Source of the DNA: Mantamonas sphyraenae STR306
Taxonomy: Eukaryota > Protista > CRuMs
Length of the DNA: 64,000 nucleotides
Assembly (NCBI GenBank): GCA_026936335.1
Contig: JAPMXV010000061.1
Location: 186,001-250,000 of the forward strand
Direction: 5' to 3'
Under the pieces are notes generated by a model. It had not been told where the DNA came from and ran no database searches. It was given only the letters and a program-made list of their open reading frames with translations. Below, one piece after another: positions 1,378-15,304 of this stretch. The position numbers and the translations under genes were made by a program. How positions within the stretch are numbered: position 1 is the first letter of the stretch; each line of letters begins with the position of its first letter.

Positions 1378-2482
1378 TCAGCAGGTGCTGTCAATCCAGC
1401 ACAACCAGGAGCAAGTGGTGGCAGCTGCTGCTGCCTTGTCCTCGTTCTCATCGCTGACCTCGACCTTGGGCACGCGGCCGTTGAAGGCACGGGTGATGGC
1501 AATGTTGCCGTCGATGTTGGACGAGGCCTTCTTGATGGCAGCACAGTCGTACTTGCATGCAGCAAGCTTGGTCTTGGCTGCATTCAGACACGTGCTCCAA
1601 CGCGGGTGCGAATCGGTCTGGCTCTTGACCACAACCTGCTCCAGGGCGTTGTACGAATCACCGCCGACCTTGGGGCACGTTGCCTTGGCCTGCTTGCTCA
1701 GGTTGTCGCAAAAGGTCATCATGAGGGCATCGGCCTCCTGTGCATCCTCCTCTGCATCTGCATCTGCATCCTCATCCTCCATCTTGTCCTCACCCTCAGC
1801 CACGGCTGCCTTGGCCGTCTCCACCTGCGCTTCCTCTGCCTCTCCGCTTCCTCTCCACTGTCGGCCTCCTCTGCCTCCACATCGCTCATCCCATCCTCCT
1901 CCTCCTCCTCGTTCGCAAATTCATCGTCTGCGCTGTCCTCTGCGTCCGCCTCCTCCTCGTCCTCGTCTTGTTCGTTGTCCGAATCGTTGTCCTGGTCCAG
2001 GTCGTCCACATCCGTGGCCGCATCCGACTCCAGTGCCTCATCCTCGTTGCTCTCCTCCTCTGCACCCCTGTGTGTATGCCCATCCCCAACCATGTGGTCA
2101 GCCTCCCATCCTCCACAAACTCACCCAGCGTCCTGGAAAAGGGCATTCTTCGCAAGGCCCGCTTTTGCAGAGGGCGAAAAAAAACGCCACCCACACGGCG
2201 CGTGCCTGTAAAACGCGCTGTACAGCTGCACATGGGGGGCATCCGGCGAGGAACGGTGCATTCACACACGTGACACACACACACAAAGAGAGAGAGACGG
2301 ATTGTGTCCACTTACGAGTTCTCCTCTTCCTGCTCCGAAGCATCGGAAGCCACGTCCAGGTCGGACGATTCGACGTCCGCCGCAGACTCGGCCTGCGTGC
2401 TGGCTGCAGTCTCCTCCTCCGCCACAACGGCAAACACAGAGCCCGAAATCAACAAAATCAGCAGAGCAAAGGTCACACGCAT
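1378..2482 (-). CDS. Secreted acidic/Cys-rich precursor family, copy 1 (divergent; tail CSWLCWIDSTC); apparent 1-nt deletion near 1840
   Basis: Exon 1 is 2482-2316 (signal MRVTFALLILLISGSVFA); phase-2 GT-AG intron 2315-2068; then acidic tract, C-x10-CP...KLAACKYDC and the tail. The frame changes at gcggagaggcag. Confidence 0.8.
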
Positions 2483-2581
2483 GTTCCAACAAGTGTGTGT
2501 GGTTTTTTTGGTTTTGTTTGGCAAGGCTCAGGCGCCGGCGCGGAAAACCACACAAAAAAAAAGACACCCAACCACACACCG

Positions 2582-3263
2582 ATGAGAAGCACTGCCGTTG
2601 CCGCTGTCGTACTGCTTATATTGGTTGCCTTTTCTCTGGCTGCTGATGCAGACGAGAAGCAATCCGTGAGCGCAGACGAGCACCAAAAGGTCTTGGACTC
2701 GATGCTTGCCGAGGAGGCTCAACGCGCCGCCAACGAGGATGGCTGGGCCATCGAGATCCAGGACGACCTTGAGGTGCAGGATGCTGACGAACGACGCCGA
2801 GCCGGTGGCTCAACGGACATTTACGGCGCCGTGGCTGCCCAGCGCGTGAGTGGATTGGTGGCCAGCCATCACCAAGCGAAAAAAGTGCACTGTGCTCCAC
2901 GCGTCTCTTTCGTCTGCCCCTGACACACACAGGACACGCGCACACACGCAACACACACGCAACACACAGTTCTGCGACACCGTGCTTGCGTCCACGAACC
3001 CGGCGTGCCCGCAGCCGTACAGTTCCGAGTTCAACGGCCTCGTGGCCCTGGTCAAGCAGATGTACGCTGGAACGGACCCGCACTTCGTCGCCAAGGGACA
3101 GGAGGCCCAGCAGAAGCTGTCCAACTGCCAGTACCGATGCGCATACCTCCGCCGGTACAGCAGGCACTTCCGCCGTGGCCGACTGCACCCTCGCATGGTC
3201 GAGGACTCCGACGAAGATTTCGGCGGCTGCTCGTGGCTGTGCTGGATCAACAACAGCTGCTAA
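2582..3263 (+). CDS. Secreted acidic/Cys-rich precursor family, copy 2 (intact)
   Basis: Exons 2582-2845 and 2970-3263 (phase-0 intron gtgagt...cacag). Signal MRSTAVAAVVLLILVAFSLA; FC..NPACP..FNGLVALV..KLSNCQYRC; ends EDSDEDFGGCSWLCWINNSC*. Confidence 0.88.
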
Positions 3264-5524: not shown

Positions 5525-6208
5525 TTACTCCTGGGCAGTAGTCTCATCGTCATCCACCTCAGCCTGGAGATCCTCAGCGTCGGAATCAATGTCGCTTGCG
5601 TTCTCCTGGGTCATGGTCTTGCTTGCTGCATCCTCAGCATCCTCCTCATTGTCCAACTGCTCCTGTTCCGTTTCGGCGTTGGCCTCTGCGTCGTCCTCCA
5701 CGTCTTCAGCGTGCTCATACTCCTCCTCCTCTGCCTCCTCATCGCTGTCCAGGTCAGACTCTTCCTCCGCTGCCTGCTCCTCCGCATCAGACTCGTCTTC
5801 ATCCTCAATCCCACTGTCCAGTTCTCCCTCACTGTCACTGTCCTCCTCCGATTCCCTGCGTGTGTGTGTATGTGAGTGTGTGTGTGTTGCATGGGGGCAG
5901 GTCTTGTGTCAGGTCTACACTTCCAACCACAAAAATTCCACCTCCCCCCCATTCTTTTCCACACTCCTCCGTCACAGACACCCACTCGCCACACCGTTCC
6001 TCCTCATTGGGTTCTCAACCTACACGGCGGACTCCTGCTCCTTCTCCTCCTGGGTCTCCTGCTGGACTTCTGTCGCAGCAGGGACCTCCATCTTGGCGGC
6101 GGCGGCAGGCTCAGCCACCACTTCCGGGGCAGCAGCCTTCTCCTCCACGGCCACAGCCATGGTCACAAGGGCAATCAAGGCAACAAGGGCAATCAGCGAG
6201 CGCTGCAT
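5525..6208 (-). CDS. Secreted poly-acidic protein; precursor-family copy 3 lacking the Cys domain and tail
   Basis: Exon 1 is 6208-6024 (signal MQRSLIALVALIALVTMAVA); phase-2 intron 6023-5856 (gtaggt...cgcag); exon 2 (5855-5525) is Asp/Glu-dominated and ends DDDETTAQE*. Confidence 0.75.
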
Positions 6209-9203: not shown

Positions 9204-9478
9204 CTCTGCTCCCCTCACGTTGGCATACCGCGCGCAAACGCAGGTACCCACAATCGTTCAACAACATCCAACGACAGCAGCATTGCCCTTCCTTCCCTCG
9301 ACACAAAGCAAGTGGATTTCGTTGAAAAATCGGTTGTTTTCTTCCCCATTCTGCGCGTCCGCACTTCAGCGTGCCTGCTTTGCCACAGGTCGCCACCGCA
9401 AACTCCGCCTTTTGTGGGGGTGAGGGTGAATGAACGAGTGATGATCAGAGGTGACATCACATCAACGTGTGCAGCTGT

Positions 9479-10502
9479 TTAGCAGCTGTTGTTGATCCAG
9501 CACAGCCAGGAGCAGCCGCCCTGGTCCTTGTTCTCGTCCTCGTCCTCAACGGCCTTGGGTGTCCAGTCGTCATCGAGAACCGTGAGCTTGCTCCATATTG
9601 GTAATCCTGCGGCTGAAGAACTTGATCAGAGCGCAGTTGTACTCGCACTTGCGAAGCTTGTTCTGGGCGGCGAGGGCAGCGTTCTTTTCCAGGGCGGTCA
9701 TCTGGTTGGGGGCAGTGCGCAGCCTCTCCACAAGCTTCACCAGGTTGTTGAAGGCGCTGGAGAATGCCTTGGGGCACTTGGGGTTGCCGCTCACCAGGTA
9801 CTGGCAGTACTTGTTGTACGAGGAGCTGGAGGAGATGCCGAAAATGCCCTCGTTCTCCTCGTCCTGGTCCTCGTCGTCCACAGCCTTGAGACCAGTGTAC
9901 CACTGTTCCATGTCGGCGTCCACGTCGTCCTCAGAGTCGGCCTCCGACTCTTCATCGTCGTCCTCGTTGGAAGAGGCGTCCTCCACGTCGTCCTCAGCCT
10001 CAAGCTGCGCCTCAACGTCGTCGCTTTCTTCCGCCTCCGAGTCCTCTTCGTCCTCGGAAGAGTCCTCCACGTCCGAGTCGGCATCCGCCTCACTCTCCTC
10101 CTCGTTGCCATCCTCACTCTCCACCTCGCTGATATTCATGTAGCGCATTTACATGTCAGCTAACCGCGTGCGGGGCGGGCAAAACAATCGGGCCAAGAGA
10201 AAAAAAATGCTTTGCAGAGGGCCGATTTGTGTGCTTGCCAACTTTTGACCGGCGCTGGAGCACCTGAGAGAGCCCATACAAAGTGGGTGAAAGTACAGGA
10301 CGCAAGACAAAGTCGGGCGCAAAACAACCAGCGTCCGGGCACGCATGCACATGGTCCACCTCTACGCCTTGGCAACTTACGCTTCGGCAGGCGATTCCTC
10401 CTGGGCCGTTTCGGCAACAGCCTCAACCGCAGGGGCTTCCTCAGCGACTGCAACCGCAGCGCCGGCAATCAACAGCACAAGCAGGGCAATGGTAATGCGC
10501 AT
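9479..10502 (-). CDS. Secreted acidic/Cys-rich precursor family, copy 4; apparent frameshift between about 9575 and 9620
   Basis: Exon 1 is 10502-10381; phase-2 intron 10380-10129; YNKYC..NPKCP..FNNLVKLV..KLRKCEYNC. The tail EDEDENKDQGGCSWLCWINNSC* is in the +1 frame. Confidence 0.82.
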
Positions 10503-10633
10503 GGTTGGTGGGATCGGGTTTGTGTTTGCCAAGTTCGCGTGCAGGCATTCCATCGCACACACACACCTACACACACGCACAAGTGATGATGATGATGAGA
10601 GTGTGTGCAATCAATGGGGTTTGTTCACGGTGC

Positions 10634-11624
10634 TTAGCAGCTGTTGTTGATCCAGCACAGCCAGGAGCAGCCGCCCTGGTCCTTGTTCTCGTCCTGAACC
10701 ATCCATGGCACGGCCTCATTGTGCTTGGAGATCGTGCCCTCTGCGGTCATCCACGTGTCGATGCTCTTGACAGTGGTGCAGCTGTACTCACACTTGGCCA
10801 GCTTCGTCTCGGCAGCCTTGGCAGCCTTCTTCTCCAGAGCCGTCATCGAGTTGGGCTGGTTGCGCGAACGCTCCACCAGAGTCACCAAGGCGTTGAACTG
10901 CATCGAGTTGGGCGTGGGGCACTTGGGGTTGCTTGTCGTCAGCGTCTTGCAGTAGTTGTTGTACGCAGACTGGGACACAAAGTACGAGCTCAGGCCGCGC
11001 TCGTTTTCATCATCATCGCTGTCCTCCATGCCCTCATACCACTGCTGCACATCCTCATCCTCCTCCTCCTCATCCTCAGACGACTCGTCACCGTCGGTTT
11101 CGGCCACCTCGTCGGCTTCCGAGGCCTCGTCGACGTCGTCCGCGTCGAGGTCCTCCTCCGCCTCCAGCTGTGCTTCATCCTCCTCATCTTCATCCTCATC
11201 ATCCTCAGTGTCGTCGCTCTCCACCTCACTCTCAACCTCGCTGTGAGTTGTGCCATGCGTGTCCGAGGTGTCAGCGACGGCGAGAAAAAAAAACACACAC
11301 AGGAGGGGAATTTGCAAGGCGGGAGTGTGTTTCATCGCCCTCGCCTGCTCCCTACACACGCCGTATGCATCATCGAGTTGCACCCACGCATTGTCACCGT
11401 ACATGGCCACTCGATGATGCACACAACACGGGTGTAGGTGGCCTGCGCGGTGGTCAAACTCGCCCTTGGGAGAAAACGTACGCTTCCGCTTCCTCAGCAG
11501 CAGCAGCGGACGAATCCTCGTCCGCAGCCGTTTCGGCAACAGCCTCAACCGCAGGGGCTTCCTCAGCGACTGCAACCGCAGCGCCGGCAATCAACAGCAC
11601 AAGCAGGGCAATGGTGAAACGCAT
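10634..11624 (-). CDS. Secreted acidic/Cys-rich precursor family, copy 5 (intact)
   Basis: Exon 1 is 11624-11482; phase-2 intron 11481-11241 (gtacgt...cacag); YNNYC..NPKCP..FNALVTLV..KLAKCEYSC; ends QDENKDQGGCSWLCWINNSC*. Confidence 0.9.
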
Positions 11625-11732
11625 GGTTGTTCAGTTTTTTTGGTTGAGTGGCGAAGCACAGGTCTTTGCGACTCCACTCTCACACACTCACACACGCTCA
11701 ACTCAGCAAGCAAAGCAAGCAAAGCAAGCGAT

Positions 11733-12791
11733 TTAGCAGCTGTTGTTGATCCAGCACAGCCAGGAGCAGCTGCCCTCGTCCTCGTTCTTCTCCTCCTCCT
11801 GGTCCTGAACACCGCCAAAGCCGCCCCAGTCGCCGCCAGGTTGGTTGTTGTTGTTGTTGTTGCTGCTCTGGCCTGTGGTGAACACATCCATACCGTTGCG
11901 ACCAGAGATGATGTCGTAGGCATCGCTGATCAGCCTGCAGCTGTACTTGCACCTGCGCAACTTGCGCTCGGCAGCACGAGCAGCCGTACGCTCCACAGCG
12001 GTCATGCTACGCGGCTTGGTGTGCAGACGCTTCACCAGACGCACGAGCGAGTTGAACGCCCACGAGTTGGGTGTGGGGCACCTCGGGTTGGATGACACCA
12101 ACGACTGGCAGAACTGATTGTACTGCGCGTCTGTGGTAGCAAAGATGTTGAACTTCTCGCCCTCCTCCTCCTTCTCAGACACCTCCTCTTCGGCCTCCGA
12201 GTTCCACTCAGCATCGTCATCCTCCTCACTCTCGTCATCATCCTCCTCCTCCTCCTCCTCCTTCTCCTCCTCCGAGTTGTCACCTTCGGCGGCCTCCTCA
12301 GACGACGAATCCTCCTCCTCCTCCTCAGATCCTCATCCGTAAACTCGTCCTCCACATCGCTGTCAAACGCACATATTCGCCCACGGCACGTGTGTCGTGT
12401 GCGTCGTCAGAGTCAGTCTCGCTGCGCCTGTGACAAAGCAAGAAAAAACGGCGCCGTTTGCAAAAGAGGGAAATTCTGGATTTTGTGTGCCAGGTTTGCG
12501 TCCGGCCACGTTTGCCGTCGCCCACGTGACACCTGCGGGTCTGTGTCACATGCGCAGCACATCATCGGCTGGACGCTATCGATGCCCAGACGGTTGGGTG
12601 GGCGGGAAACGCAGGCAATGGGGAATGGTCACGTACAGGGCGTCGTCTTCGTCTGCGCTGTCCTCAGCAGCGGGCGCTTCTGCGTCCGCGGCCTTCTCCA
12701 CCGTCTCCGTCTCGGCAGCCGCAGGGGTCTCCTCCACGGCCAGCACAGCACCGGTCAACAGCAACACAAGCAAGGCAATTGTCACACGCAT
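11733..12791 (-). CDS. Secreted acidic/Cys-rich precursor family, copy 6; apparent 1-nt deletion near 12330
   Basis: Exon 1 is 12791-12637; phase-2 intron 12636-12360; YNQFC..NPRCP..FNSLVRLV..KLRRCKYSC; ends EEKNEDEGSCSWLCWINNSC*. Confidence 0.82.
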
Positions 12792-12886
12792 GTTGTGTAG
12801 TCAGGGGTTTTGTTTGTCGGCCCAGACGCAACGCGATTTGCCACTGATGACCGACCATCCATCCCATCCATCAGCTCCCACCCCAC

Positions 12887-15304
12887 TCACAGGTTACGTT
12901 GCAGCCAGTCCAGCACACGCGTCTCATACTGCAGGGCATTGGCAATCTGGCGAGTGCCGTGCCGTTCGCTGGGAAACAACAAGAGATCGTAGGGTTTGCC
13001 CTTGGCGTTGAGCACCTCCAACAGCTCCGCCGTGTGTTGAAAGTGCACGTTTTCGTCAATCAGTCCATGCACAATCATCAGGCGGCCACTCTCCTCGGGG
13101 AAGCCGTCCGCGTACGACAACACGCTCCCGGCCTCGTATGCCTCCGGTGCATCCTGTGGCGTGTCCATGTACCGTTCCGTGTAGCCTGTGTCATACAACT
13201 CCCACCGTGTCACCGGCGCACCCGACACCGCCGCCCGGAAAAAGTCGGCGTGCTGACACATGGCCATCAGGGACATGTACCCACCGTAGCTCCAGCCGTT
13301 GACGGCAATGCGTTCAGGGTCGACAAAGCCACGCGTGGCCATGAGGTGTTTGAGGCCCGTGATTTGGTCGTGCAGTTCAAAGGTGCCCATGGCTGTGCGA
13401 AGGTGGCCCTCAAAGGCCAAGCCACGGTTGTTGCTACCACGGCCGTCGATGCACACCACAGCGTAGCCCAGGTGAGCCATGGCCTGGAAGCGCATGAGAC
13501 GAGGCCACATGAACGTGTCTCGCACGAGTTGCACGTGGGGTCCGCCATAAATGTACAGCAGTGTGGGCAGGGCCGCCGCCCCGTCATCCACAACGTCCTC
13601 CTTGCCTCCAGGCAGCAGGTACCAGCCGTGGCACGTGTCGCCGTTCTCGTTGACAAAGTCAAACAGGTGCGGGGTGTGCACGTCAAAGGATTGGGGCCTG
13701 GTGAGTTGCACCTGATCCTGCAGCGTCCACAACGGGGTGGCAGCCGACGAGGCATCCTCCGCAGAGGGAAGTTGCATGAGAGCACACACAGGCGTGTCGG
13801 CCAAGGTGGAGTACACTGTGGCAAACAGGGTGGCGTCGTCCGGGTTGTTGAACACCACCCCACCGTGATCGTAGGCCGCATTGGTCAACAGCTGCACCGT
13901 TTGCGAGCCATCCAAGGGACTGCGGTACACATTGTTGCGCAACACAGAGTCTCGCGTGGCCGAATACACCACCGCCGTCCCTGCGTCACACAGGGCCACG
14001 GGTGCATCGTTCACCTGCCACTCACCACTCGTCACCTGCACCGGCTCTCCCTTGACCACGGAGTCGCCTCCGCTGGCATCCAGATCCAACTCTTGCACAT
14101 ACAGGTGACGGAATCCCGTGCGTTCGCTGGCAAACAACAGTCGCGGCGTGTCTCCCGGAATGAAGCGCAGCAAGTCGGTGACGTTGTACCACAGCTCCGT
14201 GTTTTCCTCCAACACCGTGCGTGGGTTCACCAACGCCCCTCCCTTCACATCCACATCCCACACCACAACCTCCATGTGTTGTTGCTTGCGGTCCAGAAGC
14301 TGTGCCCACACACGTGTGCCGTCGGGGGTCCAGCCAAGACGAGGAATGTACTCCACCCACCCGTGCGTCTCCTCCAACGGCTTCTCCGTGGCCAGGTGAC
14401 ACACAGACGATGCCAATGCGTCGAAACAGGCCACATGCAACGAGGACACGGCGTTGGGTTCCCCTGCCTGCGGGTACCGGAACACATCGGCATTCCCCGT
14501 GTGGCCCACTTCCGGGATCGCATACTTGGGCACCGCTGTTTCGTCTACACGCACATACAGCATGCGATACGCTGTGCTGCTTGCATCCTCATCGCCATCC
14601 TCATTGCCCCCGTTGCTTCCGTGCACCACAGGGCACCAGTAGTAGCCTGTGAAGCGGTCAAACTCCTCCTGGATGATAAACTCGGCCACGCCTGCCGTGA
14701 TTCCCTGCGACGCATCCTCCTGGGTCAATGCACTCGTGACACCGTTGTGCTCCACACACACGTTGCCATCCACAATGTAGGACAGAAAGTGCAGGTCGGG
14801 GCTTGCGTTCAGATCCAGGCGGGTGCGTGCCTCTGCTCCCAAGGCCGCAAAGGACAACGGTCCAACGCCATCATGCTCCGCCACACTGGCACTGTACACC
14901 GACGAAGAGTGGCTCAGCACCATTTGGTCTCCTTGCATGAAGAAGCCTGTCACGCCTGTGTTGGACACCGACGCACCACGCATCCGTTCCCTCATCAGGA
15001 TCTCCTCCTTGCTCAGAGCAATCTCCCGGCCCTCGTTGCCTGCCTCGTTCTGCACCGATGCAAACTCAAACCACGGTGCCACTTGTGCGGTGTCGTCTGC
15101 AGACGAGGTGGAGGCGGACGAGGAGGAGGGCGTCGTTGCACAAAACGCGGAACGCTCACCCTTTGCAGGACGGCCCATGAAGTACACAATGGGCTTGCTG
15201 GGATGGATGTGCAGGCTGGATGGGATGCCTGCCACCCCGCGGGATGAAAGCATCTCTGCGAGCAGTGCCTTGGTGTTGGTCTTGGATGATGATGAGCTCG
15301 ACAT
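12887..15304 (-). CDS. DPP9: Dipeptidyl peptidase 8/9-like (S9B), no signal peptide or TM anchor
   Basis: QEEFDRFTGYYW, YGGPHVQLV, GWSYGGY (Ser), YDTGYTERYM, HGLIDENVHF (Asp), ERHG (His). Confidence 0.9.
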   Translation of the reverse strand: MSSSSSSKTNTKALLAEMLSSRGVAGIPSSLHIHPSKPIVYFMGRPAKGERSAFCATTPSSSSASTSSADDTAQVAPWFEFASVQNEAGNEGREIALSKEEILMRERMRGASVSNTGVTGFFMQGDQMVLSHSSSVYSASVAEHDGVGPLSFAALGAEARTRLDLNASPDLHFLSYIVDGNVCVEHNGVTSALTQEDASQGITAGVAEFIIQEEFDRFTGYYWCPVVHGSNGGNEDGDEDASSTAYRMLYVRVDETAVPKYAIPEVGHTGNADVFRYPQAGEPNAVSSLHVACFDALASSVCHLATEKPLEETHGWVEYIPRLGWTPDGTRVWAQLLDRKQQHMEVVVWDVDVKGGALVNPRTVLEENTELWYNVTDLLRFIPGDTPRLLFASERTGFRHLYVQELDLDASGGDSVVKGEPVQVTSGEWQVNDAPVALCDAGTAVVYSATRDSVLRNNVYRSPLDGSQTVQLLTNAAYDHGGVVFNNPDDATLFATVYSTLADTPVCALMQLPSAEDASSAATPLWTLQDQVQLTRPQSFDVHTPHLFDFVNENGDTCHGWYLLPGGKEDVVDDGAAALPTLLYIYGGPHVQLVRDTFMWPRLMRFQAMAHLGYAVVCIDGRGSNNRGLAFEGHLRTAMGTFELHDQITGLKHLMATRGFVDPERIAVNGWSYGGYMSLMAMCQHADFFRAAVSGAPVTRWELYDTGYTERYMDTPQDAPEAYEAGSVLSYADGFPEESGRLMIVHGLIDENVHFQHTAELLEVLNAKGKPYDLLLFPSERHGTRQIANALQYETRVLDWLQRNL

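Follow-up and report, generated by a model that had tools for sequence, protein, structure and literature searches.

A lineage-specific family of clustered, predicted-secreted proteins in Mantamonas sphyraenae with a conserved C-terminal Cys/Trp peptide

Six genes within 18 kb of a single contig (copy0, A, B, C, D and E) encode proteins that end in the same short peptide, with the consensus C-[SG]-W-L-C-W-[IV]-[ND]-[NS]-[ST]-C. The peptide is exclusive to this family, it is under purifying selection, and three of the copies are transcribed and spliced. This is an expressed, predicted-secreted family without detectable relatives, and the 11-residue Cys/Trp peptide at the end of its proteins is their most tightly constrained part. 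The favoured reading, at a probability of roughly 0.4, is that this tail is a retained C-terminal Cys/Trp clasp or inter-chain linker module carried on a flexible acidic tether. The family itself is new, and its kind, a clustered, small and probably secreted Cys-rich protein ending in a Cys tail, draws on known themes; at present it stands as a lineage-specific family rather than a demonstrated new mechanism.

The window, i.e. the whole 64 kb stretch of DNA that was analysed, corresponds to positions 186001-250000 of contig C61 in an assembly of 25.06 Mb (78 contigs, 59% GC), all of which was searched. The following features were assigned, in window coordinates except for copy0:

1381-1413 (1378..1413 with TGA), minus strand: gene A tail, CSWLCWIDSTC, from the six-frame motif search
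2582..2845, plus strand: gene B exon 1 (ATG at 2582, 88 codons), a predicted signal peptide and a mildly acidic, Cys-free N-terminal region
2970..3140, plus strand: gene B core, a 4-Cys domain (C-x9-C-P ... C-x-Y-x-C) predicted to form a helical hairpin
3141..3227, plus strand: gene B linker, with the acidic spacer EDSDEDFGG at 3201-3227, from the alignment (pLDDT 30-41)
3228-3260 (3228..3263 with TAA), plus strand: gene B tail, CSWLCWINNSC, from the six-frame motif search
9482-9514 (9479..9514 with TAA), minus strand: gene C tail, CSWLCWINNSC, in a different frame from the gene C core ORF in the window
9570-10128, minus strand: gene C core ORF, with its stop at 9570-9572
10381..10502, minus strand: gene C exon 1, a signal-peptide exon (joint 10128>10381 in run X3)
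10634..11240, minus strand: gene D exon 2, containing a polyacidic region (net charge -49), core, linker, tail and stop (joint 11240>11482, X3)
10637-10669, minus strand: gene D tail, CSWLCWINNSC, from the six-frame motif search
11482..11624, minus strand: gene D exon 1, a signal-peptide exon followed by a phase-2 intron (joint 11240>11482, X3)
11733..12359, minus strand: gene E exon 2, containing an acidic region, core, 56-aa linker, tail and stop (joint 12359>12637, X3)
11736-11768, minus strand: gene E tail, CSWLCWINNSC, from the six-frame motif search
12637..12791, minus strand: gene E exon 1, a signal-peptide exon (joint 12359>12637, X3)
C61:180555-180863, 5.4 kb upstream of the window: copy0, ending CGWLCWVNNSC, from the whole-genome protein search

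The six-frame motif search of the 64 kb window recovered four copies of CSWLCWINNSC followed by a stop codon (genes B, C, D and E), which agrees with the original prediction of an 11-mer identical in four copies, and a single copy of CSWLCWIDSTC in gene A, the copy that had been described as keeping CSWLCWI...C. In gene B, positions 3222-3263 consist of codons for GG, the 11-mer and TAA. The pattern C.W.CW matched five times in the window; after each match come five residues, the last of them Cys, and a stop codon, and all five copies were confined to the first 12.2 kb. Across the whole family W-L-C-W was invariant (6/6 copies), and every copy ends exactly on Cys, as had been claimed. A back-translated search for CxW[LF]CW returned 28 places in the genome, compared with 5 for a reversed control; a C-terminal context was present at six of the 28, these being the cluster copies only, and the remaining 22 were out-of-frame GC-rich noise on translation. 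A five-copy profile run over the genome found no family member beyond the six. The earlier suggestion of a general sorting tag is thereby weakened: no unrelated protein in the genome has the motif at its C-terminus, and the tail is therefore not a general tag.

In an alignment of the C-terminal exon, five sequences deep, the positions C2, C13, P14, C53, Y55 and C57 were invariant, defining the core framework C-x9-C-P and C-x-Y-x-C, along with one Val, one Pro, one Leu, the spacer Asp and the terminal C-x-W-L-C-W-x4-C. The net charge of the core ranged from +13 in copy0 through +5 in D and +3 in A to 0 in B. Between core and tail lies a linker of 29-56 residues with only 6-10 identical positions per paralogue pair, bearing out the description of a freely variable linker. 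Its last approximately eight residues are acidic, and it ends in GG (B, C, D and copy0), GS (E) or TT (A), with the quoted spacers EDSDEDFGG, DENKDQGG and KNEDEGS all found immediately before the tail. The four core and three tail cysteines give a total of seven in copy0, B, D and E, and the cysteines of the two pieces of gene C likewise sum to seven, so that the expected odd total held for most copies; the exception, gene A, has eight, the extra one being in the core, and also has the most diverged tail. The predicted protein layout is a signal peptide, a polyacidic stretch, a cationic 4-Cys helical core, a disordered variable linker, an acidic spacer and the tail.

The first exons begin M-R-x, continue with 15-18 hydrophobic residues and end at an A-x-A-like site, and from this signal-peptide-like character the family proteins are probably secreted. 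In genes A, C, D and E a phase-2 intron follows the signal-peptide exon and the remainder is a single long exon, and in B and copy0 a phase-0 intron lies immediately 5' of the first core Cys codon. The gene B intron begins with the donor GTGAGT at 2846, and this splice was placed from GT..AG boundaries and reading frame on sequence alone. Intron positions thus vary inside the family (window 2316-2970; L005:1809-1960). Genes A and B are arranged head to head with start codons approximately 100 bases apart. A broader superfamily sharing a common signal-peptide exon was considered and rejected, as a genome search with the first exon of gene D matched A, C, D and E only. In the middle of the cluster there is also a two-exon gene (5525-6208, minus strand) with a signal-peptide-like exon and a polyacidic exon, and without the Cys core or the tail; the genome search with the gene D first exon missed it.

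Expression was assessed from Logan contigs of four public runs aligned to window positions 9400-12850, a stretch that covers genes C, D and E. Run X3 had zero depth in the predicted introns of this region and contained the joints 10128>10381, 11240>11482 and 12359>12637, all GT..AG on the minus strand. This is the behaviour of RNA, and it bears out the transcription and splicing modelled for genes C, D and E.

Of the five family genes in the window, three (C, E and A) contain frame breaks. In gene C, where core and tail lie in different frames, the window and the organism's public contigs are of unequal length at 9574/9575 (site 9570-9576), and runs X1 and X2 contain two forms of roughly half depth apiece at this site, which suggests collapsed haplotypes or assembly indel errors. 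In gene E exon 2 the frame shifts near 12324 (break at 12321-12330), and the X2 and X3 contigs lack two bases there relative to the window. Neither at the C site nor at the E site is the length difference divisible by three. In gene A the acidic region and the core are in different frames, both of which are open at approximately 1719-1920. The breaks are taken to be assembly or strain indels rather than pseudogenisation. Within the species, too, the gene C linker is hypervariable: eight substitutions were counted in 55 bases (9567-9621) against the public contigs, compared with only two differences listed in the adjacent core and acidic region (9778 and 9894).

To compare constraint among segments, Nei-Gojobori counts were made by segment on the codon alignment. 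In the tail, pN was 0-0.13 in most pairs (0.27 for copy0 versus A) with a pS of 0.2-0.6; in the core, pN was approximately 0.29-0.59 and pS 0.34-0.58, near saturation between the older copies; and in the linker pN was 0.47-0.62. The tail is the most constrained segment of the family proteins. Between B and D, 11/11 tail residues are identical, compared with 22/53 in the core and 7/28 in the linker, and the chance of 11/11 at a per-site identity of 42% is approximately 7e-5. Even between A and B, whose tail pS of 0.60 matches that of their cores, 8/11 residues are retained, with conservative changes at the others. The tail codons themselves vary synonymously (Leu CTG/CTC/TTG, Ser TCC/TCG and Ile ATC/ATT), and DNA similarity extends from the acidic spacer as far as the stop codon, with unrelated 3' UTRs beyond it. 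An end of similarity at the stop codon together with persisting synonymous changes indicates selection at the protein level and not only gene conversion. In C, D and E the DNA of spacer and tail is identical, so that conversion or recent duplication contributes there, a process that cannot explain the tails of A, B and copy0. Alignment and codon counts together support the view of the 11-mer as a separate unit, under selection and placed exactly at the C-terminus.

Relatives of the family were sought outside the genome, with frame-broken copies searched as separate unjoined pieces and exons used singly rather than as spliced proteins. A word-based protein search with residues 90-201 of gene D exon 2 gave no match, the profile of the C-terminal exon alignment returned 0 hits at E <= 0.001 among 1.84 billion representative proteins, a scan of metagenome contigs produced 55 pattern matches and 0 relatives, and Pfam gave sub-threshold noise only. 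In the ESM Atlas, the best match by features scored 0.80, in the range reached by shuffled proteins, and a literature search found no mention of the tail motif strings. The lack of relatives is partly due to the poor sampling of this lineage, the proteome of the organism itself being evidently absent from the libraries; the best relatives of the neighbouring DPP4-type gene are 36-38% identical (an MMETSP transcript, EukProt Nk52 and Syncephalis).

AlphaFold2 models of B and D were built on the five-sequence alignment. In the model of B, residues 11-60 (pLDDT 70-85) form a helical hairpin flanked by two short strands, and residues 61-97, comprising linker and tail, fall below a pLDDT of 50, with the tail at 30-34 and in no confident contact with the core. 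The model of D has four core helices, a linker at pLDDT 33-38 and a tail helix at residues 111-116 with a pLDDT of about 59; several structural alignments of it still extend from the core as far as residues 116-120 once low-confidence stretches have been trimmed, a weak hint that the D tail helix may lie beside the core bundle. Whether the tail packs on the core, a check for which structure prediction had been proposed, is thus answered ambiguously, with a disordered tail in B and a weak helix in D. A Foldseek search of the PDB, with nothing at E below 2, an Atlas shape search and VIA-align wide on two models returned generic helical matches only (Z <= 4.7). A homodimer prediction, which bore on the polymerisation alternative of the original prediction, scored 0.02, and this score was counted neither for nor against.

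If the tail is a retained clasp or linker, two of its cysteines would make up a staple, whether inside the tail or together with the core CxYxC in the style of a twin Cx3C, the Trp, Leu and Ile residues would form a small hydrophobic face, and the terminal Cys would be the odd seventh thiol, free to bond a second chain or a partner. This reading is favoured because the Cys spacing is invariant, two Cx3C are present, the Cys total is odd and no cleavage site was found, and because the compensating eighth Cys sits in gene A, the copy with the most diverged tail. The strong constraint on the tail and its weak helix in the D model also count in favour of a clasp. Pairing of the two Cx3C, which the original prediction had raised as a possibility, is consistent with the sequences at the level of motifs, where CxYxC and the CSWLC-type Cx3C are both invariant. 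Against a clasp, the modelled B tail is of low confidence and makes no confident core contact, in a prediction from an alignment only five deep, and a linker range of 29-56 residues would be unusual between the halves of a single fold. Furthermore, a pattern in which the most conserved element closes a rapidly evolving precursor is compatible with a released peptide too.

Several known systems resemble parts of this arrangement. The secretory tailpiece of IgM and IgA and the T peptide of acetylcholinesterase are likewise short terminal extensions giving an odd Cys count, and their unpaired Cys (with aromatics in acetylcholinesterase) serves inter-chain disulfides and thiol quality control in the ER. 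However, there is no homology with these tails, which have 18-40 residues rather than 11, the present tail has three Cys, and oligomerisation is hypothetical here. The small Tim and CHCH proteins, with their twin Cx3C and Cx9C hairpins, are similar in that one Cx9C and two Cx3C are invariant in the family with predicted helices around them, but those proteins reside in the mitochondrial intermembrane space, have no signal peptide and have short fixed loops, whereas the present family has a signal-peptide exon, a variable linker and no profile or fold match to them. Tandemly clustered small secreted Cys-rich proteins, and defensin-type precursors with an anionic propiece, are comparable in that their sequences evolve fast while the Cys framework stays fixed, and in that acidic N-terminal residues offset the charge of a cationic Cys domain; unlike in those families, there is no conserved cleavage site between acidic region and core, and an invariant terminal 11-mer is foreign to them. 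A disulfide linker or clasp, if this is what the tail is, would represent a compact, transferable oligomerisation or tethering module.

A doubtful alternative, though one that would make these genes a new kind of eukaryotic peptide precursor, is that the tail is an excised bioactive peptide, cut near the GG/GS/TT-Cys junction or after a spacer Asn or Asp and disulfide-bonded or cross-linked in the manner of a hormone or a RiPP. The tail is more conserved than the remaining precursor, it occupies the very end of the chain, with Cys as the last residue, and an acidic spacer always precedes it. Somatostatin-14 and urotensin II are likewise terminal in their precursors and end on Cys, and in these peptides, as in the contryphans, a short Trp-containing Cys peptide closes a signal-peptide precursor on or near a Cys and is better conserved than the remainder of it. 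Prohormone peptides, however, have a basic cleavage site and an even number of Cys, whereas here there are an acidic spacer, three Cys and no sequence relationship. At least two proprotein-convertase P domains (PF01483; C45:305721-305969 and C33:210730-210987) are encoded in the genome, so that processing of the Kex2/furin type is available to the organism, but in the aligned copies the tail is not preceded by any conserved dibasic, Pro or otherwise recognisable processing site, and D, E and copy0 have no dibasic or monobasic site in the last 30 residues before it. The three tail Cys are also an odd number for a closed ring, and the 4-Cys core has a conserved framework in its own right and is therefore more than a pro-region.

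The surroundings of the cluster likewise argue against excision. The flanking genes are ordinary (C48 peptidase, DUF676, kinase, DPP4-type peptidase, UDP-glucose dehydrogenase, ROCO and FYVE/PH), and Pfam annotation of 12 flanking or interspersed ORFs, in a scan that spanned window positions 532-30555, found no radical-SAM, P450, DUF3328, YcaO or POP-type macrocyclase. The excision that the original prediction had centred on thus drew no support from anything tested, there being neither a conserved cleavage site nor, among the ORFs scanned, a tailoring enzyme. A protease of an unfamiliar kind may still cut at the acidic/Gly-Gly junction or behind the conserved Asx residues. The DPP4-type S9 peptidase (12887-15304, minus strand; 805 aa, DPPIV_N and Peptidase_S9) ends 96 bases upstream of the gene E start codon, and one X3 contig continues from the gene E exons into it; it was considered as a processing enzyme and set aside, as its N-terminus is without a signal peptide or membrane anchor.

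The more elaborate version of release, in which the tail would be freed through a cleavage signal in the acidic spacer or Gly-Gly and cross-linked (by Trp-Cys or as a disulfide bicycle) into a signalling or antimicrobial peptide of 8-11 residues, is distinctly improbable. The RiPP precursors of dikaritins, amatoxins and burpitides have a Kex2 KR site, a POP Pro site or an AEP Asx site, and KR/RR and Pro are unconserved here; the Asx at tail position 8 is conserved, but the residues after it are atypical. A peptide both released and cross-linked would constitute a ribosomal peptide system, operating with no basic sites, in a protist lineage without a known one.

Alternatively, the tail could be a sorting or retention signal specific to this family, read by a receptor or by thiol quality control for delivery to a storage or regulated secretory compartment and maybe trimmed later. 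The strictly terminal position and the hydrophobic centre WLCWI are in keeping with this, as is the layout of acidic and cationic modules, which resembles granule cargo, and the C-terminal vacuolar determinants of plants have a similar terminal place and hydrophobic character. However, the motif is present in no other protein of the 25 Mb genome, and a common machinery would be expected to read its tag on more than one family, which leaves such a signal unlikely.

Very little probability was given to a glycosylation cassette, in which WLCW would be a WxxW C-mannosylation motif and NNS or NSC would be N-glycosylation sequons. WxxW is indeed invariant (6/6) and an N-x-S sequon is present in 5/6 copies, but copy A is without a sequon, the three invariant Cys are left unexplained, and a six-frame search of the genome gave no candidate for the C-mannosyltransferase family Dpy19 (PF10034), an absence that is unproven as the control genomes were uninformative. 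Equally slight is the chance that recent duplication or gene conversion homogenised the 3' ends of genes whose tails have no special function: short-read contigs do break at the tract shared by C, D and E, but A, B and copy0 differ synonymously from these three in the tail, are saturated elsewhere (pS 0.4-0.6) and yet keep the peptide, identity halts at the stop codon and does not continue into the UTR, and gene B is on the opposite strand, so that as a whole explanation this is largely refuted. The remaining probability was assigned to other explanations.

The family also has a trace in an environmental sample. In a biofilm metagenome run (X4), a 257-base contig matched the core of gene D (10797-11041) with three mismatches, and the organism or a close relative was therefore present in that sample.
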